The notes under the pieces: generated by a model | The model's database searches: none | What the model was told of the DNA's origin: nothing | What the model saw: only the letters and a program-made list of their open reading frames with translations | Shown here: positions 28,779 through 30,920 of the stretch, piece after piece | Numbering within the stretch: position 1 is the stretch's first letter | Layout: the number at the start of each line of letters is the position of its first letter | Translations under genes and position numbers: made by a program | Assembly (NCBI GenBank): GCA_020137815.1 | Contig: CM035350.1 | Location: 6,696,001-6,760,000 of the forward strand | DNA: 64,000 nt | Origin: Hormiphora californensis | Lineage: Eukaryota; Animalia; Ctenophora | Reading direction: 5' to 3'

Positions 28779-28910
28779 TTTAATAATAATATATACATTT
28801 GATATACCGCTTTTATGCGTTATAAATGGAGGAAACACCTAAAAAACCTAATGGCTAGTGTTGTATGAACATCTCTCCACCGTCTTGGAATAATAGAATA
28901 AAAAGCTATA

Positions 28911-29194
28911 GGGATCCCTAAAAAAGTTCAGTATTTACACAGCGTTTACACAGTCTTTACACAGTCGTTACACCCAGAGCGGCGCGTGCTGCGTTTTTCT
29001 AAGAAAATATTGGATTGTGTGCTGCACAATTGGGTAAATTGAGCGCTGCGGCGAAAAAAGTTTCCGAAAACGCTGCAAATCGAGTGCGAAAGACGCAGTC
29101 TTTACACCCAGAGCGGCGCGGGCGCTCTGGGTGTAACGACTGTGTAAAGGCTGTGTAAACGCTGTGTAAATACTGAACTTTTTTTAGGGATCCC
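28911..29194. mobile_element. MITE with ~70-bp TIRs and TA flanks
   Basis: gggatccctaaaaaagttcagtatttacacagcgtttacacag...ctgtgtaaacgctgtgtaaatactgaactttttttagggatccc. Confidence 0.85.
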
Positions 29195-29420
29195 TATGCT
29201 TAGATAATCATCATCATCAATATACATTTAATATCCCGCTTTTTAGCACATATTACAAACTAGCACTAACATAAAGATAAACCTTAATGGATAGTTTAGA
29301 ACTTTCTAAAGCGGCTTCCTTAGATCGAGATTGGGTTAATAGTCTAGGACTGTAGATAAGAGTTCGTGCTCACTATTTTATACTCTATCATATCCCATCG
29401 GCACTCACACAGTATTCAAA

Positions 29421-30419
29421 TCAGGTACCCTCAACCACCTCATTCCCACGGATTATGTAGTGTTTGTCAGGATACCTCTTAGCCATTTGTTTTAGCCGAT
29501 CTACCAACTGTTTCCTAACATTTCTTTCCTCCGGTGTTCGATCCGGTGAAATATATACTTTATCATACTTTTCAGTCCCTCTCAGCTGCGATTTTTTCGA
29601 CAGAATCGACTTCTGAGCATCCCTGTTTCGTAGCACTACTTTCACTGGTCTGGCAGTTTGAGACTGCTTTCCCAATCGCACTAATGATGTCACAACCGGA
29701 GCCTCTTCCAGCTCAGCAAAAATGGATTTCACTTGAGTTTCAAGCTCATCACTCTTGTCATTCAGTTCGTCCAAACCATGGATGATGATGTTACAGCCAC
29801 GATCATCAGATGCTGCAGCAAGAGCCGACTGTATCTTCTTTGGGGCCAGGGCAGTAGCACATTCTTTCTCCAGAACAGATGCAAAGCTCTGTATTTCCTG
29901 CTGTGCCGTTGTCTGAACAGCGGTGATTTCAGATTCTCTCTTTTCGAGTAGTTGTCTCTGCATTTTTAGCAGCTCCTCCTGTGCAGCTACCAGATCTCTC
30001 TGGGTTTTGATTAACTCTTCACTTCGCGTTTTGAGCTCCTTCTCGAACTTCTTCACCCGTAGTGTATCATCACCCATTGAAAACAGCTCCGCGATAATAG
30101 GAAAAGTCTGACCCATCAGTATTTTGAACGCACTCTCAACAAGACCTACGAGTTCTGGCTTTTTCAGTGAGTTATTGAGTTTATCCCACGTCGGAAACTC
30201 CAGATTGTTCCAATCATCAGCAGATAGTCCGTACCGATTCTCTACATTATCCGGGTCATAGATTATTTTATTCGGGTCTACCTTCCCAAAACCTCCAGTT
30301 TTCGTCAGGACCTCTCTCACCCACTCGACCGTTAGTTCTTGGCAGTAGGTGACATCAACTTGTTCAGCGACGTCTACTCCCAGGTAAAATCGTGGATCTT
30401 CATAATCAGATTCAGTCAT
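29421..30419 (-). CDS. LINE (L2/CR1-group) ORF1-like protein: coiled coil plus RRM-like/CTD region
   Basis: Coiled coil (KKFEKELKTRSEELIKTQRDLVAAQEELLKMQRQLLEK) followed by NIIIHGLDE..RLGK..RPVKVVL..VYISPDRTPEERNVRKQLV..YIIRGNEVV, typical of LINE ORF1. Confidence 0.85.
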   Translation of the reverse strand: MTESDYEDPRFYLGVDVAEQVDVTYCQELTVEWVREVLTKTGGFGKVDPNKIIYDPDNVENRYGLSADDWNNLEFPTWDKLNNSLKKPELVGLVESAFKILMGQTFPIIAELFSMGDDTLRVKKFEKELKTRSEELIKTQRDLVAAQEELLKMQRQLLEKRESEITAVQTTAQQEIQSFASVLEKECATALAPKKIQSALAAASDDRGCNIIIHGLDELNDKSDELETQVKSIFAELEEAPVVTSLVRLGKQSQTARPVKVVLRNRDAQKSILSKKSQLRGTEKYDKVYISPDRTPEERNVRKQLVDRLKQMAKRYPDKHYIIRGNEVVEGT

Positions 30420-30468
30420 TTCGTGTCTATCTGCCCTTTGGGGCGGTCACATAACGTACATCTTCCTG

Positions 30469-30510
30469 CTCAAATTAATTTGTTTAAAGTAGTGTTGAAA
30501 AGTTTGAAAC
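30469..30510 (-). other. Ctenophore spliced-leader exon sequence (genomic retrocopy, not an SL RNA gene)
   Basis: Minus strand reads GTTTCAAACTTTTCAACACTACTTTAAACAAATTAATTTGAG, matching the Pleurobrachia/Hormiphora SL as I recall it (from memory, not searched). It is followed by CAGGAAG rather than a GT donor and Sm site. Confidence 0.75.
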
Positions 30511-30803: not shown

Positions 30804-30920
30804 TCATCATCATCATCATCACAAAATACTTAATATTCCGCTTTATAGCTTTTACTTGTCAGAAAAGTTCTTACATATGCTAGAAAACACACAGACTAAA
30901 CTAACGGCTTTCAAAAGCGG
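30804..30920 (-). mobile_element. Short 3'-end fragment of a related LINE/SINE with a (GAT)n tail; a third similar tail at ~28780-28830
   Basis: catcatcatcatc..ttaatattccgcttt...aaaagcgg has the same architecture as 29207-29313. taataataatatatacatttgatataccgctttt occurs at 28781. Confidence 0.55.

Follow-up and report, generated by a model that had tools for sequence, protein, structure and literature searches.

We believe that positions 29207-30510 (minus strand) of a 64,000-nucleotide stretch of the genome of the ctenophore Hormiphora californensis, here called the window, very probably hold one full-length member of a family of non-LTR retroelements that is non-autonomous and limited to ORF1, and whose trans-spliced RNA was reverse-transcribed by a LINE reverse transcriptase (RT) working in trans. 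The copy starts with a host spliced leader (SL) and ends in a microsatellite tail, and its leader is the key to the argument that follows.

The element in the window and its leader

The element reads, in order, SL, 5' UTR, ORF, 3' UTR and tail. Its first 42 nt are a complete, DNA-encoded SL exon of the type we call SL-A (30469-30510). Directly joined to it is a 5' UTR of 49 nt (30420-30468) that begins CAGGAAG and contains a small GCCC/GGGC hairpin (30433-30444). An uninterrupted ORF of 332 amino acids plus stop comes next (29421-30419; ATG at 30419, stop at 29421-29423). The 3' UTR (29219-29420) carries a conserved 3' module made of CCGCTTT (29314-29308), about 65 nt of intervening sequence, and AAAGCGGGATATTAA (29242-29228), which includes AAAGCGG (29242-29236), the second arm of a 3' stem. 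The (GAT)4 tail at 29207-29218 is the 3' end of the element. Neither the ORF list nor Pfam reveals an RT ORF within it, and the layout given in the preliminary description is confirmed throughout. Other SL-headed families, one of them an autonomous LINE, have this hairpin motif in their 5' UTRs as well; the predicted fold of the 5' region as a whole is no better than that of shuffled sequences. Two neighbors of the element deserve mention. About 300 nt upstream lies the 3' end of a heavily 5'-truncated relative from the same superfamily (30806-30849, minus strand; AAAGCGGAATATTAA followed by (GAT)6; repeat D3). On the tail side the element is adjoined by a MITE-like element (28908-29197, unstranded) with 62-nt terminal inverted repeats that are 98% complementary (repeats I1 and I10).

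The preliminary description took the 42-mer for a ctenophore SL, and rightly so: it is identical to nt 3-44 of the SL published for Hormiphora californensis (PMC8527503). It is also the entire exon of genuine SL RNA genes that we located in the genome. These genes number 15 for SL-A and one for SL-B in the assembly. In them a conserved promoter precedes the 42-nt exon, which is followed by a GTAAGCTGA donor and by two hairpins with the Sm-like CUUUUGG between them. The preliminary description was also right that the window locus is something other than an SL RNA gene. Its SL continues CAGGAAG whereas the genuine genes continue GTAAGCTGA, and neither a GTAAG donor nor an Sm site follows the exon. 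The promoter of the SL genes, which ends ...CCATCAGCA just before exon nt 1, is absent as well; the flank in the window ends ...ATGATAACAT. In the window the SL is thus joined at its donor boundary to sequence that is not SL intron and stands outside SL-gene context, as in an SL-tagged retrocopy.

The same situation is found across the genome. Allowing 3 mismatches or fewer, a search finds the 42-mer 475 times and a reversed control 0 times. SL-headed copies number in the hundreds, are spread over all 13 chromosomes and have flanks of their own. An earlier report listed 718 'leader loci' in the Hormiphora californensis genome. We find the structure of an SL RNA gene in only 16 SL copies, about 3% of the roughly 600 counted in the assembly. 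The mismatches in genomic SL copies cluster at SL nt 1-3, which we read as run-off at the 5' end of the RNA.

That this family is mobile and multi-copy, as the preliminary description supposed, is evident from its copies. A genome search with the window element gave 69 matches from 676 candidates. The youngest subfamily has only about 5-6 copies, 97-98% identical, with 5' truncations at query nt 26, 172, 322 and 331 and flanks that are all different. Tails range from (GAT)4 to about (GAT)9, and three copies are identical across the 620-nt stretch used for the tree. Related copies run to hundreds in several subfamilies, with near-identical bursts, and deeply diverged ORF1-only families coexist with this one (L082/L083, L085 and L086). 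The many dispersed copies, with their common 3' end, variable 5' truncation and unrelated flanks, have the pattern of a non-autonomous, LINE-derived non-LTR retroelement. In 14 full-length copies inspected by eye, clear target-site duplications were not seen, only possible microhomologies of 4-5 nt that run into the (GAT)n tail. A clean empty-site allele was not found in the assembled contigs, where the joints seen fall between flanking repeats.

Two leaders on near-identical bodies

About 13 of the 42 nucleotides distinguish SL-A from SL-B, and SL-B is encoded by its own genuine SL RNA gene. The window copy carries SL-A; a copy at C8:7535191, 97% identical to it, carries SL-B, and both are joined at the same point, GAG to CAGGAAG. 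Another pair, L010 with SL-A and L011 with SL-B, has bodies that are 98.8% identical. Overall, either leader is found on bodies 97-99% identical at the same junction, and on the tree SL-A and SL-B are interleaved inside clades of at most 1-2% divergence. Older subfamilies have both SLs at each of two alternative acceptor positions. In the CAAATGTCTATG subfamily the junctions are SL-A to TTTCAG (9), SL-B to TTTCAG (10-11), SL-A to CAAATG (2) and SL-B to CAAATG (2). The leader is not inherited together with the body, which is the mark of acquisition after transcription. At one and the same junction, copies with nearly identical bodies bear either of the two SLs, and we take this to show that the SL is re-acquired by trans-splicing in each transposition cycle. 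The junction itself is also telling. It falls after ...TTTGAG in every family examined, exactly at the exon/intron (splice-donor) boundary of the SL, and this holds in more than 10 unrelated families. All full-length copies begin at SL nt 1-3. The first 18 nt of the window's 5' UTR occur at only three places in the genome, and all three are joined to an SL.

The explanation most worth arguing with is that the SL entered the family by one or a few ancient captures and has been inherited as DNA ever since, with an internal promoter starting at SL nt 1 and no current trans-splicing. We consider this unlikely, though it has two points in its favor. Internal promoters are frequent in LINEs, and the start of every full-length copy at SL nt 1-3 is what such a promoter would give. 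In addition, the GAG at the end of the SL would be a weak acceptor by general rules, a G at position -3 normally making for a weak 3' splice site. However, if the SL were inherited as DNA its type would track phylogeny, and leaders this different are instead interleaved on nearly identical bodies. The two junction positions also combine freely with both SLs, which inheritance does not explain. A single retrocopy, or a domesticated host gene derived from an ORF1, is in our opinion highly improbable. The intact ORF, its purifying selection and the small size of the youngest subfamily would all suit it, but the hundreds of related copies, the 5' truncations, the unique flanks, the variable tails and the near-identical bursts would not; copy number and the pattern of truncation contradict it.

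Two further ideas put the SL at the front of the element by another route, and we give almost no credence to either. Elements that target SL genes are known in trypanosomatids and nematodes, so a site-specific insertion of the CRE/SLACS/NeSL type into SL RNA genes, with the SL as target DNA co-transcribed from the SL promoter, has precedent. It is contradicted here by the lack of SL-gene sequence on either side of the copies: the upstream flanks differ in all of them, 0 have the conserved SL-gene promoter, and the SL intron lies downstream of none. The exact boundary in so many unrelated families argues against it too. The RT might instead have switched templates from element RNA to free SL RNA, as in the U6-L1 chimeric pseudogenes of mammals, where LINE RTs are known to jump onto small nuclear RNAs. 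Such a jump is scarcely believable as the source of these copies, whose junction is at the splice donor of the SL rather than at the 3' end of the ~110-nt SL RNA, and whose element side is joined at fixed positions, not at variable truncation points. Least probable of all, with a chance close to nil, is that the assembly is at fault, through cDNA contamination or a chimeric read. Only the cDNA-like look of the copy speaks for it. Contigs from the source sample bridge the boundary between flank and SL with 0 mismatches; the SL-headed copies are far too many and too widely scattered; and the structure reappears, between genomic flanks, in independent assemblies (locus L090).

Trans-splicing of the element's RNA, renewed in each cycle, is therefore the reading we prefer, and it agrees with the original proposal on this point. 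The proposed cycle would run as follows. The host SL would be trans-spliced onto element RNA, and the capped, SL-headed mRNA would be reverse-transcribed and inserted by a LINE RT supplied in trans. In this way the SL would become the opening 42 nt of the element in DNA. The next question is where new RNA comes from. The preliminary description raised the possibility of a source locus with an outron in place of the SL; a pattern search upstream of the UTR start found no outron-bearing copy in either subfamily. Since every copy that reaches the start of the 5' UTR is SL-headed and none has an outron, SL-headed copies are most likely the templates. They would be transcribed by read-through or from a promoter, which may lie inside the element, and the RNA would then receive a new SL by trans-splicing. 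As acceptor it would use the AG that closes the resident SL, whose sequence has no other AG, or in some subfamilies the TTTCAG just downstream. Re-use of the acceptor would rebuild a complete capped 5' end in every cycle and would spare the RNA from carrying a promoter. RNA data from an oligo-dT metatranscriptome include a 154-nt contig that covers the 3' part of the SL, the UTR and the start of the ORF with 1 mismatch, and which may derive from DNA carry-over or another copy. These data are assembled contigs, in which RNA starts are invisible.

The preliminary description understated the scope of the phenomenon, since the window family is one among many SL-headed retroelement families in the genome, autonomous ones included. 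We would give even chances to a more general view, that in pleurobrachiid ctenophores the SL exon supplies an entire community of retroelements with a portable 5' module that renews itself, capping any read-through transcript at the terminal AG of the resident SL independently of promoters. This community would consist of autonomous LINEs with APE and RT domains, several ORF1-only families, and families with a hammerhead-like motif. If this is true, the 5' ends of retroelements make up about 97% of some 600 SL copies that were once counted as leader loci. Rfam (E<=0.01) finds no hammerhead ribozyme in the loci with SL+CTGATGA...GAAAC. The sub-threshold, miRNA-like Rfam matches at these loci are caused by head-to-head SL palindromes. 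One real SRP RNA is among the Rfam matches.

The protein, the 3' module and a candidate donor

The ORF was described as LINE ORF1-like, a claim upheld by fold and left without a match in Pfam. Its N-terminal part is helical; a long coiled coil follows (about aa 87-190), and the C-terminal domain is RRM-like (about aa 207-332). In the AlphaFold model (pLDDT 75) aa 87-190 form a long helix and the C-terminal domain has the topology beta-alpha-beta-beta-alpha-beta. The best 10 Foldseek matches are all human LINE-1 ORF1p, with E from 3e-5 to 7e-4, headed by the ORF1p trimer (2ykp/2yko/2ykq, E 3e-5) and including 2w7a (TMt 0.69). Pfam gives no Transposase_22 match at E<1, only coiled-coil noise, and a profile search against PDB sequences gives nothing at E<10. 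The fold of the model thus shows a predicted architecture of the LINE-1 ORF1p type, coiled coil plus RRM. At least 8 diverged copies keep the ORF intact, and in every subfamily some 200 nt separate its stop codon from the tail. Between subfamilies its dN/dS is 0.11-0.27, which indicates that it is held under purifying selection. The presence of ORF1, the absence of ORF2 and the conservation of the ORF through amplification are the features of a HAL1-like element. Among homologues of the ORF, the cluster members include one EukProt entry from Pleurobrachia bachei, and homologues are encoded on ENA contigs of about 1.2-1.5 kb.

A family without RT needs a donor, and the preliminary description suggested an autonomous LINE with the same 3' end. 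The stem module of such an element exists; the tail does not agree. The LINE in question, L081, is autonomous and SL-headed, with an ORF1 and an ORF2 that has APE (Exo_endo_phos) and RVT_1 domains; homologues of its ORF2 carry APE, Exo_endo_phos_2 and RVT_1 domains and bear no clade names. The L2/CR1 group, to which the preliminary description assigned the RT, is a possible placement. The CCGCTTT...AAAGCGGGATATTAA module is common to L081 and the window family, and both blocks are invariant across the subfamilies and L081 while the sequence between them diverges. The tail of L081 is (TGATT)n versus (GAT)n in the window family, and BLASTP finds no similarity between the window ORF and the ORF1 of L081. 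We regard L081 as a candidate RT donor on these sequence comparisons, and its identity stays provisional because the tail repeat and ORF1 differ. The minimum free energy fold pairs the CCGCTTT and AAAGCGG arms with a z-score of -0.73, no better than shuffles, and the stem has no covariation, both of its arms being invariant. We presume that the ORF1p-like protein would coat its own RNA in cis and hand it to the donor's ORF2 protein by way of the shared 3' stem and tail.

Significance and comparison with known systems

LINE-like elements lose their 5' ends in reverse transcription and are thought to survive by means of internal promoters or host promoters nearby. Host SL trans-splicing that both defines and caps the 5' end of an element would be a third solution to this problem. 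It would also connect trans-splicing and retrotransposition, which are usually separate fields, in an early-branching animal. There are practical consequences as well. With so few SL copies built as SL RNA genes, the 718 'leader loci' need to be read again. SL-bearing cDNA that is mapped to the nearest genomic SL would create false shared first exons at the heads of retroelements. The type of SL and the acceptor site together would make a natural tag for each event, with which independent retrotransposition events could be counted. The system also opens to experiment the question whether an SL exon lying within a pre-mRNA can act as a trans-splice acceptor.

We found no published description of an SL-headed, ORF1-only retroelement family, but several known systems share parts of this one. 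HAL1 of mammals also encodes a protein of the ORF1p type without an ORF2, relies on an autonomous LINE and keeps its ORF intact during amplification. The window family differs in lacking sequence membership in Transposase_22, in ending with a 3' stem module and microsatellite repeats where HAL1 has poly(A), and in having a host SL at its 5' end, not the LINE-1 5' UTR promoter. In Hormiphora californensis, moreover, several deeply diverged ORF1-only families exist side by side. The 3' module and short-repeat tail common to L081 and the window family resemble the LINE/SINE pairs of the stringent type (CR1/L2-like), except that the tail units differ and the non-autonomous partner codes for a protein.

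Other systems bring a leader and a retroelement together. In Hydra about 30% of TE Iso-Seq reads have a trans-spliced leader, so there too TE RNAs use the host SL machinery; in the accessible part of that report the SL is described on RNA only, not on the genomic 5' ends of TEs, and with no swapping of SLs (PMC12220107). CRE, SLACS, CZAR and NeSL-1 are retroelements that adjoin an SL exon in the genome, and their transcripts begin with SL nucleotides. They sit at a fixed internal position of the exon with half of the SL gene on either side, whereas in the window family the SL itself makes up the 5' end of the element, with the junction at the splice donor and unrelated flanks around it.

A parallel in DNA comes from dinoflagellates, where a relict SL is re-used as the acceptor in a further round of trans-splicing. 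There too a trans-spliced leader stands in genomic DNA at the head of retroposed mRNAs, as the DinoSL relics encoded at their 5' ends attest (PMC6050394, PMC5585692, PMC12014239). The dinoflagellate retrogenes are copies of host genes with truncated tandem relics of the SL, whereas the window family is a self-propagating transposon with a complete SL, and its host is an animal. Unlike the dinoflagellate leader, the SL of Hormiphora regularly heads retrotransposons, both autonomous and non-autonomous.

The element and its family

The copy in the window (G000:C1:6696001-6760000) lies on the minus strand (29207-30510, 1304 nt) and begins with a 42-mer spliced leader (SL) sequence, SL-A (30510-30469), which abuts without a gap a 49-nt UTR starting CAGGAAG (30468-30420). 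It continues with an ORF of 332 aa (ATG at 30419, stop at 29421-29423), a 3' UTR of about 200 nt carrying CCGCTTT (29314-29308) and AAAGCGGGATATTAA (29242-29228), and a (GAT)4 tail (29218-29207); there is no reverse transcriptase (RT) ORF within it. A small GCCC-loop-GGGC hairpin at 30433-30444 sits inside a motif of the form GATGTRAC-GCCC...GGGCAG, which is also found directly upstream of the ORF1 start in the 5' UTRs of other sampled genomic stretches (L009, L025, L043, L048, L077 and L078). It is common to diverged SL-headed families, one autonomous LINE among them, and is possibly a packaging or translation signal.

Adjoining the tail at 28908-29197 is a MITE-like element bounded by 62-nt terminal inverted repeats that are 98% complementary; it contains 11-nt tandem repeats and, judged from contig depth, is part of a very high-copy repeat. 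Two further retroelement 3' ends, strongly 5'-truncated and with an AAAGCGG-ATAT-AA module, lie at 30806-30849 and 28780-28813; one has a (GAT)6 tail and the other (ATT)n. Elsewhere related elements often sit inside one another's tails, as in the flanks of L002 and L003.

The preliminary description proposed a mobile element, and a search of the 110.7-Mb, 45-contig assembly does find a multi-copy family (69 scored matches from 676 first-look candidates) with different flanks, 5' truncations and varying tails. The youngest subfamily, whose members are 97-98% identical, consists of the full-length window copy, C8:7535193 (truncated within the SL) and further copies whose 5' truncations fall at query nt 172, 322 and 331. 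Their flanks are all different and their (GAT)n tails are of unequal length. No clear target-site duplications were seen, only 4-5-nt matches merging with the tail. Older subfamilies at about 80% and 70% nucleotide identity, some of whose copies form near-identical bursts, are about 1.2 kb long and keep the layout of SL, short UTR, ORF, 3' UTR of about 200 nt and tail. The junction between flank and SL is bridged exactly by contigs from the source sample. The databases yield just 31 homologues of the ORF, carried on contigs some 1.1-1.6 kb in length; Pleurobrachia bachei is among their sources, at 91% identity. Contigs from a related species (organism B) carry the family at 90-99% identity, and elements of this type also occur in environmental assemblies, one of which includes genomic flank ahead of the SL.

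Leader genes and leader copies

The 42-mer, which the preliminary description identified as the pleurobrachiid ctenophore leader, matches exactly nt 3-44 of the SL published for Hormiphora californensis, present on 56% of Iso-Seq reads (PMC8527503). It occurs 475 times in the genome at no more than 3 mismatches; the reversed control occurs 0 times. The exon-intron junction of true SL-A RNA genes is found at only 15 places in the assembly, among them a cluster at C13:3181466-3195481 (L061-L066), inverted pairs at C9:4528099-4529060 (L072, L073), C11:221671-222709 (L074, L075) and C5:6431344-6432004, and a gene at C12:4023261. In all of them a conserved promoter ending ...CCATCAGCA precedes the 42-nt exon, and after the GTAAGCTGA donor an Sm-like CUUUUGG lies between two hairpins. 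The window locus has neither donor nor intron, and its upstream flank is unrelated to the SL-gene promoter, so the preliminary description was right to reject an SL RNA gene here. The genome paper counted 718 leader sequences and took them as leader loci (PMC8527503); given 15 SL-A genes against 475 SL-A copies, most of these are not SL genes.

Our censuses combine pattern counts with 30+30 sampled loci and 28 genomic stretches. Among 30 exact SL copies sampled by position (L031-L060), none is an SL gene. A homologue of the window ORF comes next in 9, a CTGATGA...GAAAC motif in 8, and varied sequences in the remainder, several of them found at more than one locus. Mismatches of genomic SL copies cluster at SL nt 1-3, as run-off or slight truncation at the RNA 5' end would give.

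In the motif-bearing loci (L031, L032, L037, L039, L044, L045, L049 and L052, with the SL near position 1501), CTGATGA or CTGAAGA, a short hairpin and GAAAC follow the SL directly. This resembles the hammerhead core of Penelope-like elements or retrozymes; Rfam at E<=0.01 called no hammerhead there. Several of these loci have an inverted SL head-to-head just upstream, making long palindromes. About 300 nt from one such palindrome is a gene for metazoan SRP RNA (Rfam RF00017, 240 bits; L052:1815-2110, minus).

A second leader, SL-B, is 43 nt long, about 70% identical to SL-A and ends ...TTATTGAG (L088:143-185, G000:C13:2741192-2741234). Its one genuine SL RNA gene shares the promoter end, GTAAGCTGA donor and Sm-like site of the SL-A genes, and the leader occurs 129 times in the genome. 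It falls outside the genome paper's criterion of >90% identity, so it may be unreported for H. californensis.

How the element acquires its leader

The two leaders are swapped between nearly identical bodies. Within the youngest subfamily, SL-A heads the window copy and its C8 relative, 97% identical, has the 3' part of SL-B, yet the GAG|CAGGAAG junction is the same in both. In the CAAATGTCTATG subfamily all four combinations are present: TTTCAG is joined to SL-A in 9 copies and to SL-B in 10-11, and CAAATG to each leader in 2 copies. Two copies with unrelated flanks, L010 headed by SL-A and L011 by SL-B, share 98.8% identity across 1187 nt of their bodies. A maximum-likelihood tree built from the ORF region shows leader types interleaved within clades of no more than 1-2% divergence.

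A leader inherited as DNA should track this tree, which is not what is seen. Had the RT switched template onto SL RNA, copying would have run past the splice donor, where the junctions in fact stop. CRE, SLACS and NeSL elements target SL genes, but insertion into such genes would leave SL-gene flanks, which are absent here. Trans-splicing of the element RNA before each reverse transcription, as the preliminary description suggested, accounts for all these observations, the SL being added anew in each cycle.

The source of the pre-mRNA is a separate matter. The search for a locus with an ordinary outron, meaning non-SL upstream sequence, found none among the youngest-subfamily copies described above, to which the CAGGAAG UTR start is confined in the genome, and none in any copy of the CAAATGTCTATG subfamily. 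All copies with a preserved 5' UTR start are SL-headed, and the source copies would then be SL-headed as well. Since SL-A is replaced by SL-B at the same junction, we infer that the acceptor must be the terminal AG of the resident SL, which by inspection is the sole AG dinucleotide in either leader. A new SL spliced there would renew the full junction; splicing at TTTCAG, six nt further along, would give the shorter type. Regeneration at the terminal AG, already raised in the preliminary description, is favored by the comparative data, although G at -3 makes a weak splice acceptor by general rules. A promoter inside the element is also possible. In an oligo-dT metatranscriptome, one 154-nt contig connects the 3' part of the SL to the ORF with 1 mismatch, and another covers 3' UTR sequence.

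The protein, a candidate RT donor and known systems

The ORF was called LINE ORF1-like. By sequence this found no backing, since Pfam gave nothing real and a family profile matched no PDB sequence, but at the level of predicted fold the label holds. An AlphaFold model from ten family members (pLDDT 75) has N-terminal helices, a single long helix spanning aa 87-190 and a beta-alpha-beta-beta-alpha-beta domain. The best ten Foldseek hits in the PDB are all human LINE-1 ORF1p; they include the trimer entries 2ykp, 2yko and 2ykq (E 3e-5) and 2ldy, an RRM-CTD entry, and are followed by 2w7a, an isolated RRM (TMt 0.69). At least 8 diverged copies have kept the ORF intact. Between subfamilies dN/dS is 0.11-0.27, and even for the window copy against its 97% relative it is 0.12; selection has therefore maintained coding capacity in the lineages that continued to transpose.

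The autonomous partner that the preliminary description proposed to look for, sharing the 3' stem and (GAT)n tail, is found in part. L081 (G000:C1:7438400-7445400) is an SL-headed autonomous LINE with a 410-aa ORF1 and an ORF2 of about 970 aa containing Exo_endo_phos (an APE-type endonuclease by Pfam) and RVT_1. Two invariant 3' blocks, with about 65-70 diverged nt between them, are shared by L081, all subfamilies of the window element and the fragment at 30806-30849. However, the L081 tail is (TGATT)n, and its ORF1 has no detectable relationship to the window ORF. We therefore regard L081 as provisional: it demonstrates that such RT donors exist without naming the actual one. The 3' blocks pair in the MFE fold but no better than shuffles, so conservation, not folding, argues for the putative stem.

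Other SL-led elements are headed by ORFs that share about 30% identity with that of the window element. L082/L083, L085 and L086 represent three more SL-headed families with ORF1 alone, each about 1.2 kb long, whose tails are (TAAAA)n-like, (TAA)n and (TTATGT)n; ORF1-only organization is old and has diversified. L087 (G000:C2:5705700-5712900) is a presumed autonomous LINE, SL-headed, with ORF1 and a 973-aa ORF2. With both L081 and L087 SL-headed, the SL heading is a general feature of the retroelements here rather than a trait peculiar to ORF1-only elements. A contig joint at 29242/30480 (run X1), where the SL is followed by 16 other letters and then directly by the 3' module, suggests a tiny SINE-like SL-headed element with little beyond the SL and a LINE 3' end.

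Both halves of this arrangement have precedents. HAL1 elements are known ORF1-only LINE derivatives, as the window element is. The SL-tagged retrogenes of dinoflagellates resemble it as SL-tagged retrocopies (PMC6050394, PMC5585692, PMC12014239), and in Hydra TE transcripts are reported to carry SLs (PMC12220107). Our full-text search of an incomplete literature collection found no retrotransposon families with SL-starting genomic copies in ctenophores or other animals. The SL-headed retrotransposon family is a variant of these two separately known kinds, and apparently a new one.
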